Positions 1 to 6,322 of a stretch of 64,000 nucleotides of DNA are shown here, piece after piece. The translations under genes were made by a program, and so were the position numbers. Source of the DNA: Caecitellus pseudoparvulus (lineage: Eukaryota > Protista > Bigyra: Bicosoecida); NCBI GenBank assembly GCA_965644315.1, contig CBFFRQ010000031.1:682001-746000 (forward strand), read 5' to 3'. Each line of letters opens with the position of its first letter. The first letter of the stretch is position 1. The notes under the pieces were generated by a model. That model was not told where the DNA came from. It ran no database searches and saw nothing but the letters and a program-made list of their open reading frames with translations.

Positions 1-359
1 CCACTGCCAGGGCGATGGATCTGGCTGCTGTATGTGGTGGTTTGGTGCCTGCCTCATCGTAGTGGTATCGTGGGAGCTGTGGAGTGTGCAGCGACAAGGG
101 CCGCTAAGGACTGCCCCAGCGCAGGCAGTGTAGTCCTTTCAACTTCCCAGCATTCGGCACCACGTGACACCCAGTTCGAGCCGCTTGCCAAGGTTTTGGT
201 CTGGCTGTCCACTGATTGCACCGCTGTGCCGGCCAGGGCACCAGCGCTGCGCTAGCAAATTCAAACCATAATCAAACCCTCGTAGCAACACCTTCACCCA
301 GGGTGCGTTTCCCCCAGTGGCTGCTTTCGCTTGCGTTGCAGGGCAGGGACGGTCACAGC

Positions 360-2474
360 ATGGCAGTGCCCGGGACCGCTCTCCCAGGCACAGGGGTGCC
401 TGGCACGTCTGCCGGCGCCTTGTACTACACCCGGGCGGGGGTGCAGGAAGGCACGTACACGGGGACGGTGTACGGCTTGATCAAGGAGCAGAAGTACGAT
501 GAGGCGGCGCAGATCCTGAGCATGGAGCTGCAGACGTTCCCCCGGTCCAGGGCCGCACTGTCCCTGCTGGGCCACTGCTACTACCACATGCAAGACTTCA
601 GGTCAGCGGCCCTGACCTATGAGCAGCTCGTGCGATTCCATCCTGAGGTGGAGGAGTACAAGATGTACTTGGCTCAGAGCCTGTTCAAGGCAGGGCTGTA
701 CGAAGACGCCACCAAGGCCTGCATGCGGGTGGACAACGAGAAGTATGAGCAACGCCTGCTGCAGCTGCACGCCGCCATCAAGTACGAGCAGGACGAGCTG
801 GCAGCGTGCACAACCCTCGTGGACCAGTGCGTGCCAGACGAGCCTGACACCATCGTGAACAAGGGCTGCATTGCGTACAAGTCGGGCGATTTCGAGGGGG
901 CACAGGGGCTGTTTTCAGACGCCATGAGCAGCCTTGGGTACCAGGCAGACTTGACGTACAACATCGCCCTGTGCGCGTACGGCGCGAAGAAGTACGGGGA
1001 GTGCCTTAAGCATGTAGCTGGCATCATTGAGCGAGGGGTGAGGGAGCACCCTGAGCTGTCTGTGGGCAGCAACACCGACGGCGTGGAGGTGGGTAGAAAC
1101 GCGCTCGTAACGCCGCTGGCGACAGCTCCAACGGAAACGGCCGCGCCCGCCCGGCACACCTGCAGCACGCGCCCCGCGCGCCCTTCCTTGCAGGCACGGA
1201 GTGTGGGTAACACACAGATCCTACGCGACACAGCTCTTGTCGAGGCCTTCAACCTGAAGGCGGCAGTGGAGTTTAACCTGGGCAACTTCGAAGCCGCGAG
1301 GGTCAGCTTGTCAGACATGCCTCCGCGTGCCGAGGCTGAGATTGACCCCGTCACCTTGCACAATCAGGCCCTCATGCACATGGACGAGGAGCCTCAGGAT
1401 GGCTTCCGCAAGCTGAACTTCCTGCTGGCCAACCCGCCGTTCCCGCCGGAGACCTTCGCAAACTTGCTGCTGCTGTATGCCAAGCACCAGTACTTCGACC
1501 TGGCGGCAGATGTGCTGGCAGAGAACATGCACCTGACACAGAAGTACCTGCACCCGGAGCTCTTCGACTTCCTGGATGCCATCATCATGACTGAGACTGC
1601 CCCAGAGGAGGCGTACCGCAAGCTGGACCTGCTGGCGTCCGGCCACGTCGAGGCGCTGCGCAAGCACACCAAGGCCATTCAGGACTCCCGCCTGGGGCAC
1701 CAAGAGGCCGGTGTGCAGGATGGCTTGCAGGTGTACGACGAGGCGCTGGACCGCTTCGTCCCCGTGCTCATGTGGATGGCGAAGATCTACTGGGATCGGG
1801 AGAACTACGAGCAGGTGGAGAAGATCTTCAAGCAGAGTATGGAGTTCTGCCAGCAGCACGACGTGTGGAGGCTGAACGTTGCCCACACCTTCTTCATGCA
1901 GGAGGGCAAGTACCGGCAGGCCATCCACTACTACGAGCCGTTCGTGAAGAAGCACATGGACAACATCCTGGACGTCACAGCCATTGTCCTGGCCAACGTC
2001 TGCGTTGCGTACATCATGACGAACGCCAACGCAGAGGCGGAAGAGCTCATGCAGGCCATCGAGGCAGCCGAGAAGCAGGAGCTGGCAGCCGACCCCAGCA
2101 AGCAGTTGGTGCACCTGTGCATTGTCAACCTTGTCATTGGCACGCTGTACTGCGCCAAGGGCAACTATGAGTTCGGCGTGTCCCGCATCATCACGTCCCT
2201 AAAGCCGTACGACAAGAAGCTCAGCACGGACACCTGGTTCTACGCGAAGCACTGCTTGCTAGCGCTGACCGAGACGCTGGCCAAGAACATGCTGACGCTG
2301 CAAGACTCCATCTTTGCCGACATCATGTCGTTCTTGGAAGCCGCTGACGAGTACGGGCGTGACATCCCCACCGCCATCGGGCAAACAGAGGGGGACGTGG
2401 ACGTGGAGACGAGCAACGTCAGCCGCGAAGCCCGTGCTCTGCGGCGCCTGCTGCTGCGGATTCAAGGCATGTGA
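360..2474 (+). CDS. IFT70: Intraflagellar transport protein 70 / TTC30 (fleer), TPR protein
   Basis: Family motifs GVREHPELSVGS, ALVEAFNLKAA, DMPPRAEAEIDPVTLHN, PPFPPETFANLLLLY, HLCIVNLVIGTLYCAKGNYEFG. ATG at 360. In-frame GT-AG intron 1089-1193 restores GVE|ARSVGN. Confidence 0.96.
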   Translation: MAVPGTALPGTGVPGTSAGALYYTRAGVQEGTYTGTVYGLIKEQKYDEAAQILSMELQTFPRSRAALSLLGHCYYHMQDFRSAALTYEQLVRFHPEVEEYKMYLAQSLFKAGLYEDATKACMRVDNEKYEQRLLQLHAAIKYEQDELAACTTLVDQCVPDEPDTIVNKGCIAYKSGDFEGAQGLFSDAMSSLGYQADLTYNIALCAYGAKKYGECLKHVAGIIERGVREHPELSVGSNTDGVEVGRNALVTPLATAPTETAAPARHTCSTRPARPSLQARSVGNTQILRDTALVEAFNLKAAVEFNLGNFEAARVSLSDMPPRAEAEIDPVTLHNQALMHMDEEPQDGFRKLNFLLANPPFPPETFANLLLLYAKHQYFDLAADVLAENMHLTQKYLHPELFDFLDAIIMTETAPEEAYRKLDLLASGHVEALRKHTKAIQDSRLGHQEAGVQDGLQVYDEALDRFVPVLMWMAKIYWDRENYEQVEKIFKQSMEFCQQHDVWRLNVAHTFFMQEGKYRQAIHYYEPFVKKHMDNILDVTAIVLANVCVAYIMTNANAEAEELMQAIEAAEKQELAADPSKQLVHLCIVNLVIGTLYCAKGNYEFGVSRIITSLKPYDKKLSTDTWFYAKHCLLALTETLAKNMLTLQDSIFADIMSFLEAADEYGRDIPTAIGQTEGDVDVETSNVSREARALRRLLLRIQGM

Positions 2475-2489
2475 ATGCATTGTCAGCCC

Positions 2490-4763
2490 TCACGCGGTGA
2501 CGCCCATCCAGGGGAAGACGGCCTGCACCGCGAACTGCACTGGCAACCAGGACAGGATGGTGCTGCGCTCGGAGGCCAGCAGGGGCATGATGATGATGCA
2601 GGCAACGTGCAGGAGATCGTACGCACGGCGCAAGGAGCTGGGCGTGGGGCAAGGCAGCAGCGCCAGGCGCATGGCATACGCAGCGACGGCAAAGAAGTGC
2701 GCCACCAACACCCACGGCTTGGGGGTGAGGCCAGCCAGCAGACCCACTGGCCCCGCTGCCTGTGCACCACCCAGGGACATGTACTGCATGCACGCGTCTC
2801 GCAGGCGAGCCCGGGTGCTGTCGGGATCTGCCTTGCCGCCTGCAGCTGCGGGGTTCGTGAATACGCCGTGCAAAGCATTGGCCAGGACGTTGATGGTGGC
2901 GGCATGGTGCCCTCTGGAGGCAGCGTGGGCGGCAAGGGCCACCCCCACGCACCGGGAATTGGTCAAGTCCACTCCCTGCAAGTGTTGCCAGAGGCTGGCG
3001 ACGTCCTTCAAGGCCACTGTCATGCCACCGCCGGTGAGGGGATGGCGCATGTTGAAGCTGTCGCCCAGAGCCACGGCGTGGTTGCGGGTGAAGGGCGTCG
3101 CAGACATGTGCTTGTTGCGGCACACCTCTGCGTTCTGGGTCTTGACGGCTTCTTCAAACAGGTCGCGCACGCCCTCCGGCAGCTGCGGCTTCACGGTGGT
3201 CAGGAGGTACTTCGACAGGGAGCCATCCACCGGATCCGGCAGAGGGGCCGGGACGTCCACGAGGATGCGGGTCTCTGTGGAGGAGATCTGGTACAGCAAG
3301 ACAGGGTTTGGGTTGGCCAAGACGACGTGGCCGTGCCGGGGGTACGGCAGGGGGCAGGAGCCCTCCTCGTGGTGCAGGGCCAGTCCCACGAAGAAGGATG
3401 AAGCCGTCACCTTGGGCTCCGTCAACACGCGCTTGCGCAAGGCAGAGTGTGCGCCATCTGCCACGACGGTCAAAGGGGCTGTCACGGTGTGGCTGTTCTT
3501 CTCGGCATCCACCCACTTGACGCCCACGGCAGTCTCGGCGTTGCCGCCACCCAGCTTCGCGGCGGGGTGGCTTGCGGGCACATCCTGGGGGGAAAGCAGG
3601 GCCGTCACCCGCCCCTCATGCATGGTGATGTTGGGGTGCTGCTTTGCCATGTCGCGCAGCGCCTGCACGAAGCGGTGGTTGTGGAAGGAGCGCCCACGAG
3701 GGTGTTGGGCAGGGGTGCCCGGGCGCGGGTCGAAGCCAGACGACACGGGGCCCCGGGAAGGCTCTCCTACGGGCAACCCTTGCAGGCCTGCAAACTCGGC
3801 GATGGAAGCCGGGTCGTGGGTGGGGTAAGGCAGCACGAGGTCCCTGCTGCGGTCTGCTCCGGGGGTGAAGCAGACATAGCCGTCAACCTGGATGGGGTCG
3901 ATGGCCGAGGTCTTGGCAGCCTCGTCCAGGCCCATGTCCTCCAGGGCTCGGATGCCTCCAGGCTGCATCAGCTCACCCACAATGCGGTGGGGGATCGTCC
4001 AGCTGCGCTCCACGACAGTGACCTTGCGGCCGTCCTTTGCCAGACGAAGGGCCAGAGCCGTGCCGGCAGTACCGGCACCGACAACGACAACCTGCAGGCG
4101 GTGGGGGGGTGGACAGTGGTCTAAAGCGGAGTGTATGCTGTCTGCTGCTCGGTGTGTGGCTGAGCGCCTGCCCGAAAGGGCTGGCTTGTCGCTGATGCTG
4201 CGGTGAGCTTGCACTCACATCAGTGTCAAAGCCAACATCAGTTGCGTGGGTGGTGGCGGGCACAAGCCGAATGGGGGAAGGGCCTGCACTCAAGTCCTCA
4301 TACACCCATGCCACACCGAAGAAGGCCGTCATGTAGCACAGCGTGACCAGCGCAGTGCAGCTTGCCAGCAGCACGTCAGGCTGGGCAACGAAGTACATCA
4401 GCGCATGGTCACGGCCATGGGCAAGCATGAACTGCAGCATGTATGCAACAGAGGTGGCAAACAGGACCAAGGCCAGAGTGTTCGTCACGTTGAACAGGTC
4501 CCATCGAGGTGCAAGATTGCCCTTCGCATCCTGTGCCGGGCGTGAAATCAAGCATGACGTAAGCGTTTCAGCGCAGTTTCACTGCCACCTGCAGACAAAC
4601 TCACCCGCACGGAGTACCTGAACCAAAGGCTTGCCATGACGTACAGCGAGAGGACACCTGCAAACATGGCAACTCCCGTGTAGACATCATGCAGGATGCC
4701 GGCCGCAGCCAGGGCCGCTGGCAGAGCTGCTGAAGCAACCACTGGCAGGGACAGGCTCAGCAT
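2490..4763 (-). CDS. SQLE: Squalene epoxidase (FAD monooxygenase) with extended multi-TM N-terminus
   Basis: Motifs DVVVVGAGTAG, RIVGELMQPGG, GRSFHNHRF, VVADG, GDSFNMRHPLTGGGMTVA. Phase-0 introns 4531-4604 and 4092-4218 join the three ORF pieces (YSVR|DAKG, FDTD|VVVVGAG). ATG at 4763. Confidence 0.92.
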
Positions 4764-4958
4764 GCTGATGGTGGAGTGAAGTGTGCCACGAACGCTGACG
4801 TTGAGCTGCAGAGAGCACCTGGGGGAGACCCACGTGGTCTGTACTGGAGACAGGGGGGGGTTTGTAATGTGGTAAATGCCGGGTGACGGCACGGCTGCCG
4901 AGCGAGACCTGCACGGGGCTGATGTGGGCCATGAACATCAGGGTGTGCCGAGAAAGCT

Positions 4959-4980
4959 GAGCGTCAACGGAGCGTCAACG
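4959..4980. repeat. Perfect 11-bp tandem repeat GAGCGTCAACG x2 in the divergent SQLE/DES1 promoter
   Basis: Read directly at 4959-4969 and 4970-4980. Confidence 0.8.
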
Positions 4981-5214
4981 TGCCCCCCCCCCCTTCCTGC
5001 CCCCTTCATTTCATCTGGAGACCAGCAGGCGGCAGGCTCAAGGGGGCCGGCCCCTCACTTTTCACAAGGGTGTCAATCCAGGCGCTGTTCCTCCCTTCCC
5101 TGCCGCTTGGACTCAAGCAACGTGCAGCGCGAAACGCCAGTTCACGGCCTTCGGTGTTTTCGTCAACATCCTCGCTGCCGCTCTGCGTCCCGCTCCCAAT
5201 CGACAGGACCAGCC

Positions 5215-6322
5215 ATGCCTTTTCAACACGAGGAGTTTGAGTGGTCAGAGCAGGAGGAGCCCCACAAGTCAAGGAGGCTGGGATTGCTGAAGGAGTTCCC
5301 TGAAGTGAGTTGGCCGGCATATGCGATGAAACGCCACGCACCACAGACTTCCCCCGCCGGCACTCGCGAGCAGGTGAAGAAGGTCTTGGGAAACAAGAAC
5401 TGGACCCTCACCCCCATGGTCCTGGGGGCCAACCTGGTGCAGTTCAGCTTGGCGTACTTCATGCGGGATGTCCCTCTGTGGGCCATGCTCATCGTGGCGT
5501 ACACCATTGGTGGCAGCATCAACCACGCCATGACACTGGCTATGCACGAGCTGTCGCACAACTTGGCCTCCAAAAGCCTCCTGTGGAACCGTGTCCTGGG
5601 CTTGCTCTCCAACCTGCCCTTGGGTCTTCCAAGCTACGCGTGCGTGGCTTCCTCGGAGCCCTGGCTCGTGGTCCACTTCATTTACGCTTGCCCCCCCTCC
5701 CCTTCTCCACAGCACCTTCAAGCGGTACCACCTGGAGCACCACAAGTACCAAGGCGAAGATGGCATCGACGTGGACGTCCCCACGACTTTTGAAGGGCAC
5801 TTCTTCGTGGGACCTGTGCTGAAGACCATCTGGTGCTTCCTGCAGCCGTTCTTCTACGCCCTGCGCCCCCTCATTGTGCTGCCCAAGCCACCATCCACCA
5901 TGGAAGGCTTCAACTGGCTCGTGCAGCTTGTTGTGGACGGCCTGGTGTGGTACTACTGGGGCTTCCCCGCCCTGGGGTACATTCTCCTCTCCTCCCTGCT
6001 GGGCCTTGGCATGCACCCCATGGCGGGGCACTTCTTTGCGGAGCACTACACCTTTGTCACCTCCCAAGAGACGTACTCTTATTACGGCCCTCTGAACTGG
6101 TTCTCCTTCAATGTCGGGTACCACAATGAGCACCACGACTTCCCCAACGTGCCAGGCACACACCTGCCTGACGTGCGGGCTGTCTCCCACGCTGCCTACG
6201 ATGACCTGCCCACGCACTCCTCTTGGATTAAGGTGATCTGGAGGTACATTACCAACCCCACCATCACCCCTTTCAACCGTGTCAAGCGCAACACCATGGG
6301 TGGCGCCGTGGACCTGGACTGA
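5215..6322 (+). CDS. DEGS1: Sphingolipid delta(4)-desaturase DES1
   Basis: N-terminal FEWSEQEEPH; His boxes HELSH, HLEHH, HNEHHDFP; QETYSYYGPLN. Introns 5305-5373 and 5640-5712. Confidence 0.96.

Follow-up and report, generated by a model that had tools for sequence, protein, structure and literature searches.

The window analysed here, a stretch of 64,000 nucleotides from the bicosoecid Caecitellus pseudoparvulus (contig CBFFRQ010000031.1, positions 682,001 to 746,000), carries on its minus strand, at 2490-4763, a squalene epoxidase (SQE) gene of three exons, the second of which encodes a two-helix hairpin that is homologous, on the strength of profile comparisons, to the membrane domain of plant-type HMG-CoA reductase (HMGR). 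The interpretation that we favour, and hold with considerable confidence, is that this is an expressed gene in which the hairpin is supplied by an exon of its own, and that the hairpin (hereafter the module) represents a portable family found on several proteins of sterol and lipid metabolism. What such a module might do beyond anchoring its host is a separate matter, on which our confidence is graded below.

The homology is concluded because matches between profiles were obtained in both directions and because they were accompanied by shuffle and same-protein controls. A profile made from 20 SQE N-termini only (alignment A1) was searched with HMMER against 1.84 billion representative proteins, using a whole-library threshold of E<=1e-3, and returned 123 matches, with the epoxidase domain present, at least in part, on 28 of the 119 new ones. 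Among the matches are the HMGR of Achlya hypogyna (P0140; E 1e-9, and itself matching Pfam HMG-CoA_red at 3e-134), a fragment of the Laminaria digitata HMGR, a fragment from Chlorochromonas that clusters with the full-length HMGR P0261, and about 19 HMGR N-termini from land plants (E 5.6e-7 to 8e-4), one of which belongs to Ananas and two of which include the catalytic domain. Additionally, two unlabelled fragments lie on their contigs directly upstream of a gene call with an HMG-CoA_red match and on the same strand; both are the first exons of HMGR genes that were split by a prokaryote-style gene caller. When profile was compared with profile using hhalign, A1 aligned with 17 plant HMGR N-termini at a probability of 97.9 (E 5.4e-13, score 63.6). 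In the reverse direction, exon 2 alone matched an HMGR-only alignment of 11 confirmed HMGR N-termini (A3) over 78 columns (hhalign probability 97.0, P 1.1e-10), and also matched a plant-only HMGR alignment (A2; probability 79.6, P 1.5e-5). Further, a six-frame search of the 30.6 Mb genome with the HMGR-only profile recovered exactly two places, exon 2 being the best of them (E 2.1e-9). The HMGR-like anchor that a preliminary description of this gene had placed on the SQE is hence recovered with significance in both directions and at a level of likeness far above chance. The plant HMGR strings quoted in that description are borne out by P0208, which reads like the one from Arabidopsis, and by the remaining plant HMGR N-termini.

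An explanation by chance or by the biased composition of hydrophobic helices, with no common ancestry, could draw on the low pairwise identity (21-24% in the hhalign alignments), on the location of the region outside all Pfam families and on a feature search of the ESM Atlas with exon 2, in which this language-model approach yielded no usable match; it is nevertheless very improbable, as the score of 63.6 stands about 20 standard deviations above that of shuffles confined within helices and loop (n=100; 11.3 +/- 2.3, maximum 17.7), as against 18.6 for the reversed plant profile and 9.5 +/- 1.9 for 100 column shuffles, as both search directions are significant, as the remaining hydrophobic stretches of the same protein match HMGR at probabilities of 0.2% (exon 1) and 0.5% (the C-terminal membrane helices of the epoxidase), and as one and the same polar signature, with a loop of similar length, recurs from host to host.

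This signature was derived from 88 modules with a mutual identity below 70%. Helix 1 is preceded by a P-x-P-[RK]-W motif, the W of which is conserved in 99% of the modules, and itself contains an Asn (100%) followed by a Phe at +7 (94%) and a Ser three positions further on (81%). Downstream of a variable loop, helix 2 opens with Leu-x-Tyr, in which the Tyr is invariant (100%), continues through two aromatic or aliphatic positions and a [GA] position to a Phe (98%), a second Phe (92%) and a Gly (97%), and closes with [VI]-[SA]-F-[VI]. About 10 consecutive positions on this helix are conserved. The module in the window has every invariant residue of the signature, arranged as a P-R-W motif, helix 1 with its Asn, Phe and Ser, the loop, and helix 2 with its Tyr and F-F-G, and a hydropathy scan likewise resolves two helices joined by a short loop. 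If the topology of plant HMGR, in which both ends face the cytosol, also holds for the module, the conserved positions would all fall in that half of the hairpin which lies towards the cytosol. The module defines a domain family absent from Pfam.

A census of the proteins bearing the module agrees with the alternative raised in the preliminary description, namely that the segment is a mobile module of the sterol pathway. The hosts found comprise HMGR, SQE, the C-terminus of squalene synthase, Rieske proteins, a START protein and an acyltransferase, and every host that could be classified among the 1.84 billion proteins searched belongs to a sterol or lipid pathway. The module of the START protein P0138 matches HMGRs at a probability of 98.7 and that of the Florenciella acyltransferase has a probability of 98.5. 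The squalene synthase is represented by a fragment, P0235, whose residues 1-100 align with residues 240-338 of the human enzyme (E 9e-23) and which ends in a module matching HMGRs at 95.7; the module can therefore occupy a C-terminus as well as an N-terminus. Three Rieske or Rieske-plus-KshA_C proteins bear the module, two of which (P0213 and the cluster-mates of P0176) carry the JGI name ‘cholesterol 7-dehydrogenase’. A word search with the N-terminus of a chrysophyte HMGR added 25 full-length HMGRs with the module, one of them bearing the label of a cryptophyte transcriptome. As for the provenance of P0235, it derives from a 1051-nt JGI metagenome contig (L010) that is cut at its 5' end, and it has a sister fragment in P0219. 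Four metagenomic proteins of 427-557 residues (P0187, P0192, P0204 and P0205) begin with the module and have no clear Pfam domain after it, save for a weak HMG-CoA_red trace in P0192 (E 0.006); these may be further host families or read-through gene calls.

Within the Caecitellus genome itself the module is found in a narrower setting. The HMGR of this genome (G000:C73:21789-25721, L001; Pfam 1.1e-110) has none: its N-terminus is without a hydrophobic helix and gave no match in the six-frame search with the HMGR-only profile. Instead, the N-terminal frame, which is split by at least one intron, has an Ala/Ser/Arg-rich start that resembles a targeting presequence. Because the HMGR is without the module, a coupling of SQE to HMGR is impossible here, and the suggestion that a shared anchor co-localises or co-degrades the two enzymes is ruled out in this genome. 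The second and only other copy of the module (G000:C68:518490-518684, minus strand; L008:3844-5877, minus strand) heads a frame of 678 residues, in which a Rieske [2Fe-2S] domain is matched at 2e-20 and KshA_C weakly. Its module matches HMGRs at a probability of 95.2 and is separated from the Rieske domain by more hydrophobic segments, and the protein resembles the metagenomic module bearers named ‘cholesterol 7-dehydrogenase’. The bearers of the module in this genome are the SQE and this Rieske protein only.

With regard to the structure of the SQE gene, translation reproduces the originally proposed phase-0 splice of exon 2, ending in FDTD, straight into the FAD motif of the epoxidase, beginning VVVVGAG, and the reading frames of all three exons are free of internal stops (see the table). 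The two junctions were likewise recovered in transcript-derived contigs: public marine metatranscriptome contigs aligned to 2400-4950 join exon 1 to exon 2 and exon 2 to exon 3 in frame. Intron 1 is precisely absent from contigs of runs X1, X3 and X4, which come from two studies, and intron 2 is precisely absent from one RNA-seq contig of X3, the shorter side of which measures 83 nt; the interior of intron 2 (4120-4205) has zero coverage in any of the metatranscriptome runs so aligned. The exon joins of the NCBI protein model P0003 are identical, and a relative encoded on a 49-kb metagenomic contig (L009), with an enzyme 70% identical to the present one, has the same three exons and introns at the same two positions. 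Further, the N-terminal module stands in one polypeptide with the enzyme in over 40 SQEs, whose sources are brown algae, Tribonema, Cafeteria and unnamed marine eukaryotes or metagenomes. It could still be argued that the gene model is an artefact, with exons 1 and 2 as parts of another small gene or of a leader that is not translated, and with a start of the epoxidase in exon 3, and two gene calls might be cited to this end: in P0001, called in prokaryote style on a Logan contig, intron 2 is read in another way, and P0002, the call for the relative, begins just ahead of the FAD motif. The in-frame joins in contigs from transcriptome libraries, the single-polypeptide SQEs and the lack of any start codon ahead of the FAD motif in the spliced frame of exon 3 together make this account scarcely credible.

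The Logan call P0001 deserves a separate remark. It is a protein of 666 aa in which exon 2, intron 2 and exon 3 are read as a single frame; in the window, unlike in P0001, the 127-nt intron leaves exons 2 and 3 in different frames. At a run of C near 4100-4110, P0001 has two Pro and the window frame (ORF 2490..4214) four, and exon 3 of P0001 differs by one residue (N to D). At the other end of the gene, the two hydrophobic stretches of exon 1 correspond to residues 6-24 and 27-45 of P0003 in the hydropathy scan and are kept in the relative on L009. Exon 1 encodes an additional N-terminal membrane or signal-like segment that precedes the module.

Table. Coordinates of the SQE gene and its parts in the window
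Feature	Position	Strand	Description
Exon 1	4605..4763	-	ATG at 4761-4763; 53 residues with two hydrophobic stretches, by translation
Intron 1	4531..4604	-	74 nt, GT..AG, phase 0
Exon 2	4219..4530	-	104 codons: two-helix module and a linker of ~30 residues ending FDTD
Module core	4291..4515	-	75 residues; first row of alignment A1
Module helix 1 (approximate)	4420..4476	-	Kyte-Doolittle, 19-residue window; P0003 residues 72-90
Module helix 2 (approximate)	4318..4374	-	Kyte-Doolittle scan; P0003 residues 106-124
Intron 2	4092..4218	-	127 nt, GT..AG, phase 0; falls precisely where the linker gives way to the FAD-binding motif
Exon 3	2490..4091	-	Complete SQE catalytic region, 533 residues plus stop (2490-2492); starts VVVVGAG
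FAD-binding G-x-G-x-x-G motif	4062..4091	-	Very start of exon 3; Rossmann-type Pfam matches, residues 1-34
Pfam SE domain	2646..3479	-	Exon 3 residues 205-482

The identity of the enzyme was assessed by searching the exons one at a time, the database model P0003 being used for the hydropathy scan only. Exon 3 matches the Pfam SE family (PF08491) at E 4.8e-79, with 265.7 bits against a cut-off of 20.1, and FAD_binding_3 at E 2.8e-16, while its residues 1-34 are covered by DAO, FAD_binding_3 and NAD_binding_8 matches. The best named members of its 3478 homologues are annotated as squalene monooxygenase and come from stramenopiles. Exon 3 is therefore unambiguously a squalene epoxidase by its sequence, the epoxidation of squalene itself being a predicted activity. 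Exons 1 and 2 have no Pfam family above threshold, and no sterol-sensing family was matched in either of them even at E<=10. The one candidate that did surface in these exons, DUF997, is sub-threshold (17.8 bits against a cut-off of 26.3) and was taken as hydrophobic noise.

A functional proposal for the module can be framed on the basis of plant HMGR. In Arabidopsis, the two hydrophobic segments of HMGR direct the enzyme to the endoplasmic reticulum (ER), where it resides with both ends in the cytosol (PMC8430881). By extension, the hairpin of the SQE would insert in the ER with both ends cytosolic and hold the catalytic domain on the cytosolic face of the membrane, and the conserved residues beside the cytosolic ends of the helices would suit a fixed surface for helix-helix or lipid contact. 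Such a surface might bring the enzymes that carry the module together in a single ER subdomain or subject them to a common turnover system, the enzymes concerned in this organism being the SQE and the Rieske sterol-desaturase-like protein. More than an anchor is favoured because the intramembrane Asn and the Tyr are invariant and a glycine-containing run is conserved on all faces of the helix, features commonly seen in membrane helices that make specific contacts with lipids or with other helices. Given the homology, we would put the chance that the module provides a self- or cross-associating or lipid-responsive surface, which co-localises or co-regulates its bearers, at close to even.

The main rival to such a clustering or co-regulatory surface is that the module, while homologous to the HMGR anchor, is a passive ER anchor only, which has spread by exon or domain shuffling and whose signature reflects the needs of insertion or retention. 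Indeed, anchoring is the sole function established for the two helices of the plant domain, by way of ER targeting dependent on the signal recognition particle (PMC8430881), a diatom HMGR deprived of its N-terminus becomes cytosolic (PMC7766473), and the module-free HMGR of this genome leaves no SQE-HMGR coupling to be explained. Nevertheless, an invariant polar Asn and Tyr together with a conserved run of about 10 positions on helix 2 would be unusual for a mere anchor, the classified hosts all belong to sterol or lipid metabolism, and the isolated membrane domain of Arabidopsis HMGR by itself causes ER proliferation and recruits endogenous HMGR, which is concentrated in ‘ER-HMGR domains’ (PMC8430881). 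We regard the passive anchor as possible but rather doubtful. A broader version of the surface proposal sees in the module an ancient portable element of sterol metabolism, shared by plants, stramenopiles and their relatives, which marks proteins that control flux or handle sterols (HMGR, squalene synthase, SQE, a sterol C7-desaturase-like Rieske oxygenase, a START protein for lipid transfer and an acyltransferase) for one ER subdomain or for a lipid-responsive degradation system. This can be offered only tentatively, and we think it unlikely in its full extent; were it true, the module would be the functional counterpart of the animal and fungal sterol-sensing domain/INSIG system and of N100 (the N-terminal extension of mammalian squalene monooxygenase) in lineages without a sterol-sensing domain.

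Several points weigh against the favoured interpretation and the function built upon it. The evidence for the removal of intron 2 is one RNA-seq contig, and runs X1 and X4 were flagged ‘probably DNA’ by software, their library source being given as metatranscriptomic. The tree of the module is poorly resolved (74 columns), and with so few columns no donor, order or direction of transfer is claimed; likewise, the taxonomic range is only sketched because most matches are unnamed metagenomic fragments. Plant HMGR is the model for the membrane topology and the location in the ER, both of which would apply to the SQE by analogy, and conservation might equally arise in a passive anchor that had to fit a narrow machinery of insertion or retention. 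Finally, the module-free HMGR removes the most attractive version of co-regulation for this organism.

The source genome, that of a marine eukaryote, is compact, with ~60% G+C and canonical GT..AG introns. A TPR protein gene (216-2474, plus strand) is convergent with the SQE gene and lies downstream, and a gene for a sphingolipid delta-4 desaturase (4876-5793, plus strand; Lipid_DES 6.9e-9) is divergent and lies upstream, the spacer between the divergent SQE and desaturase being put at roughly 450 bp. This order of TPR protein, SQE and desaturase is kept in the 70%-identical relative on L009. The database model P0003 is identical to the N-terminal 400 residues of the gene product and is filed at NCBI under a dinoflagellate name, as ‘SQE2 [Symbiodinium sp. 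KB8]’; this label most likely marks a co-cultured organism. A dinoflagellate origin of the window is rejected in view of the size of the genome (30.6 Mb), its compactness, G+C content and canonical introns, and the stramenopile affinity of the SQE. The C-terminus of P0003 is mis-modelled, in that its sequence breaks off near residue 409 and 13 unrelated residues follow.

In publications on plants, the membrane domain of HMGR is said to show little or no resemblance from one eukaryotic kingdom to another (PMC8430881; PMC9478949). The present observations show that it is not confined to plants and has repeatedly been attached to squalene synthase and SQE, which are likewise enzymes that control flux in sterol synthesis, and to sterol-modifying or sterol-carrying proteins. 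No published description of the module outside plant HMGR was found in a full-text literature search, which had limited coverage of subscription journals, most of them being beyond its reach; within that compass, the earlier statement that the architecture is undescribed stands. What is reported here is hence a membrane domain that was already known, now placed in architectures that are new for it and recast as a mobile family, apparently undescribed as such. Plant HMGR is not known to have a sterol-sensing domain, and its membrane domain is strongly conserved. The signature offers a short list of invariant positions for mutation, namely one Asn, one Tyr and the F-F-G, and the occurrence of the same module on different enzymes amounts to a set of natural swap experiments. 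If the module does mediate co-clustering or shared turnover, this would be relevant to the ER metabolon that has long been sought for the synthesis of isoprenoids and sterols. There is additionally a relevance to engineering in algae and plants, in which truncation of the HMGR N-terminus is routinely used to raise flux.

Comparison with known systems helps to place the module more precisely. The closest in kind is the membrane domain of plant HMGR, which corresponds to the ‘1S’ domain of the Arabidopsis enzyme and to ‘motif 5’ of PMC3983158. In plants, OSER formation depends on an N-terminal motif of the enzyme. The window module and the plant domain share homology at the profile level, a layout in which a short loop joins two helices, the invariant Asn, Phe and Ser of helix 1 and the Tyr-x-x-Gly-Phe-Phe-Gly of helix 2, and a position N-terminal to a cytosolic catalytic domain, to which they are joined by a variable linker. 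They differ in that the window module sits on an SE domain rather than on HMG-CoA reductase, is preceded by one or two extra hydrophobic segments, and retains the P-R-W ahead of helix 1 that the land plants have lost, with L-P-L-P in its place. The closest form of the module is that of the HMGRs of stramenopiles and other protists (Achlya, Laminaria, Chlorochromonas), which have the P-x-P-[RK]-W and often one extra upstream helix, and are unlike the SQE in their catalytic domain. This region of the protist enzymes is probably the one recognized as ‘three helices’ in diatom HMGR by a study that counted the helices only and did not report a relatedness to plants or to SQE (PMC7766473).

Two further systems may be comparable in function. 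The N100 of mammalian squalene monooxygenase, like the module of the SQE, extends this enzyme at its N-terminus and is embedded in the membrane. It is built as a re-entrant loop and an amphipathic helix and not as a two-helix hairpin, and no mammalian-type SQE is among the 28 A1 matches that include part of the epoxidase domain. According to PMC8166775, N100 couples the stability of the mammalian enzyme to membrane sterol. The sterol-sensing domain of yeast and animal HMGR, known also from SCAP and NPC1, for its part, has five or more helices and belongs to a different family; nevertheless, as a membrane domain on a sterol enzyme that mediates regulated degradation, it provides a possible functional analogue of the module.

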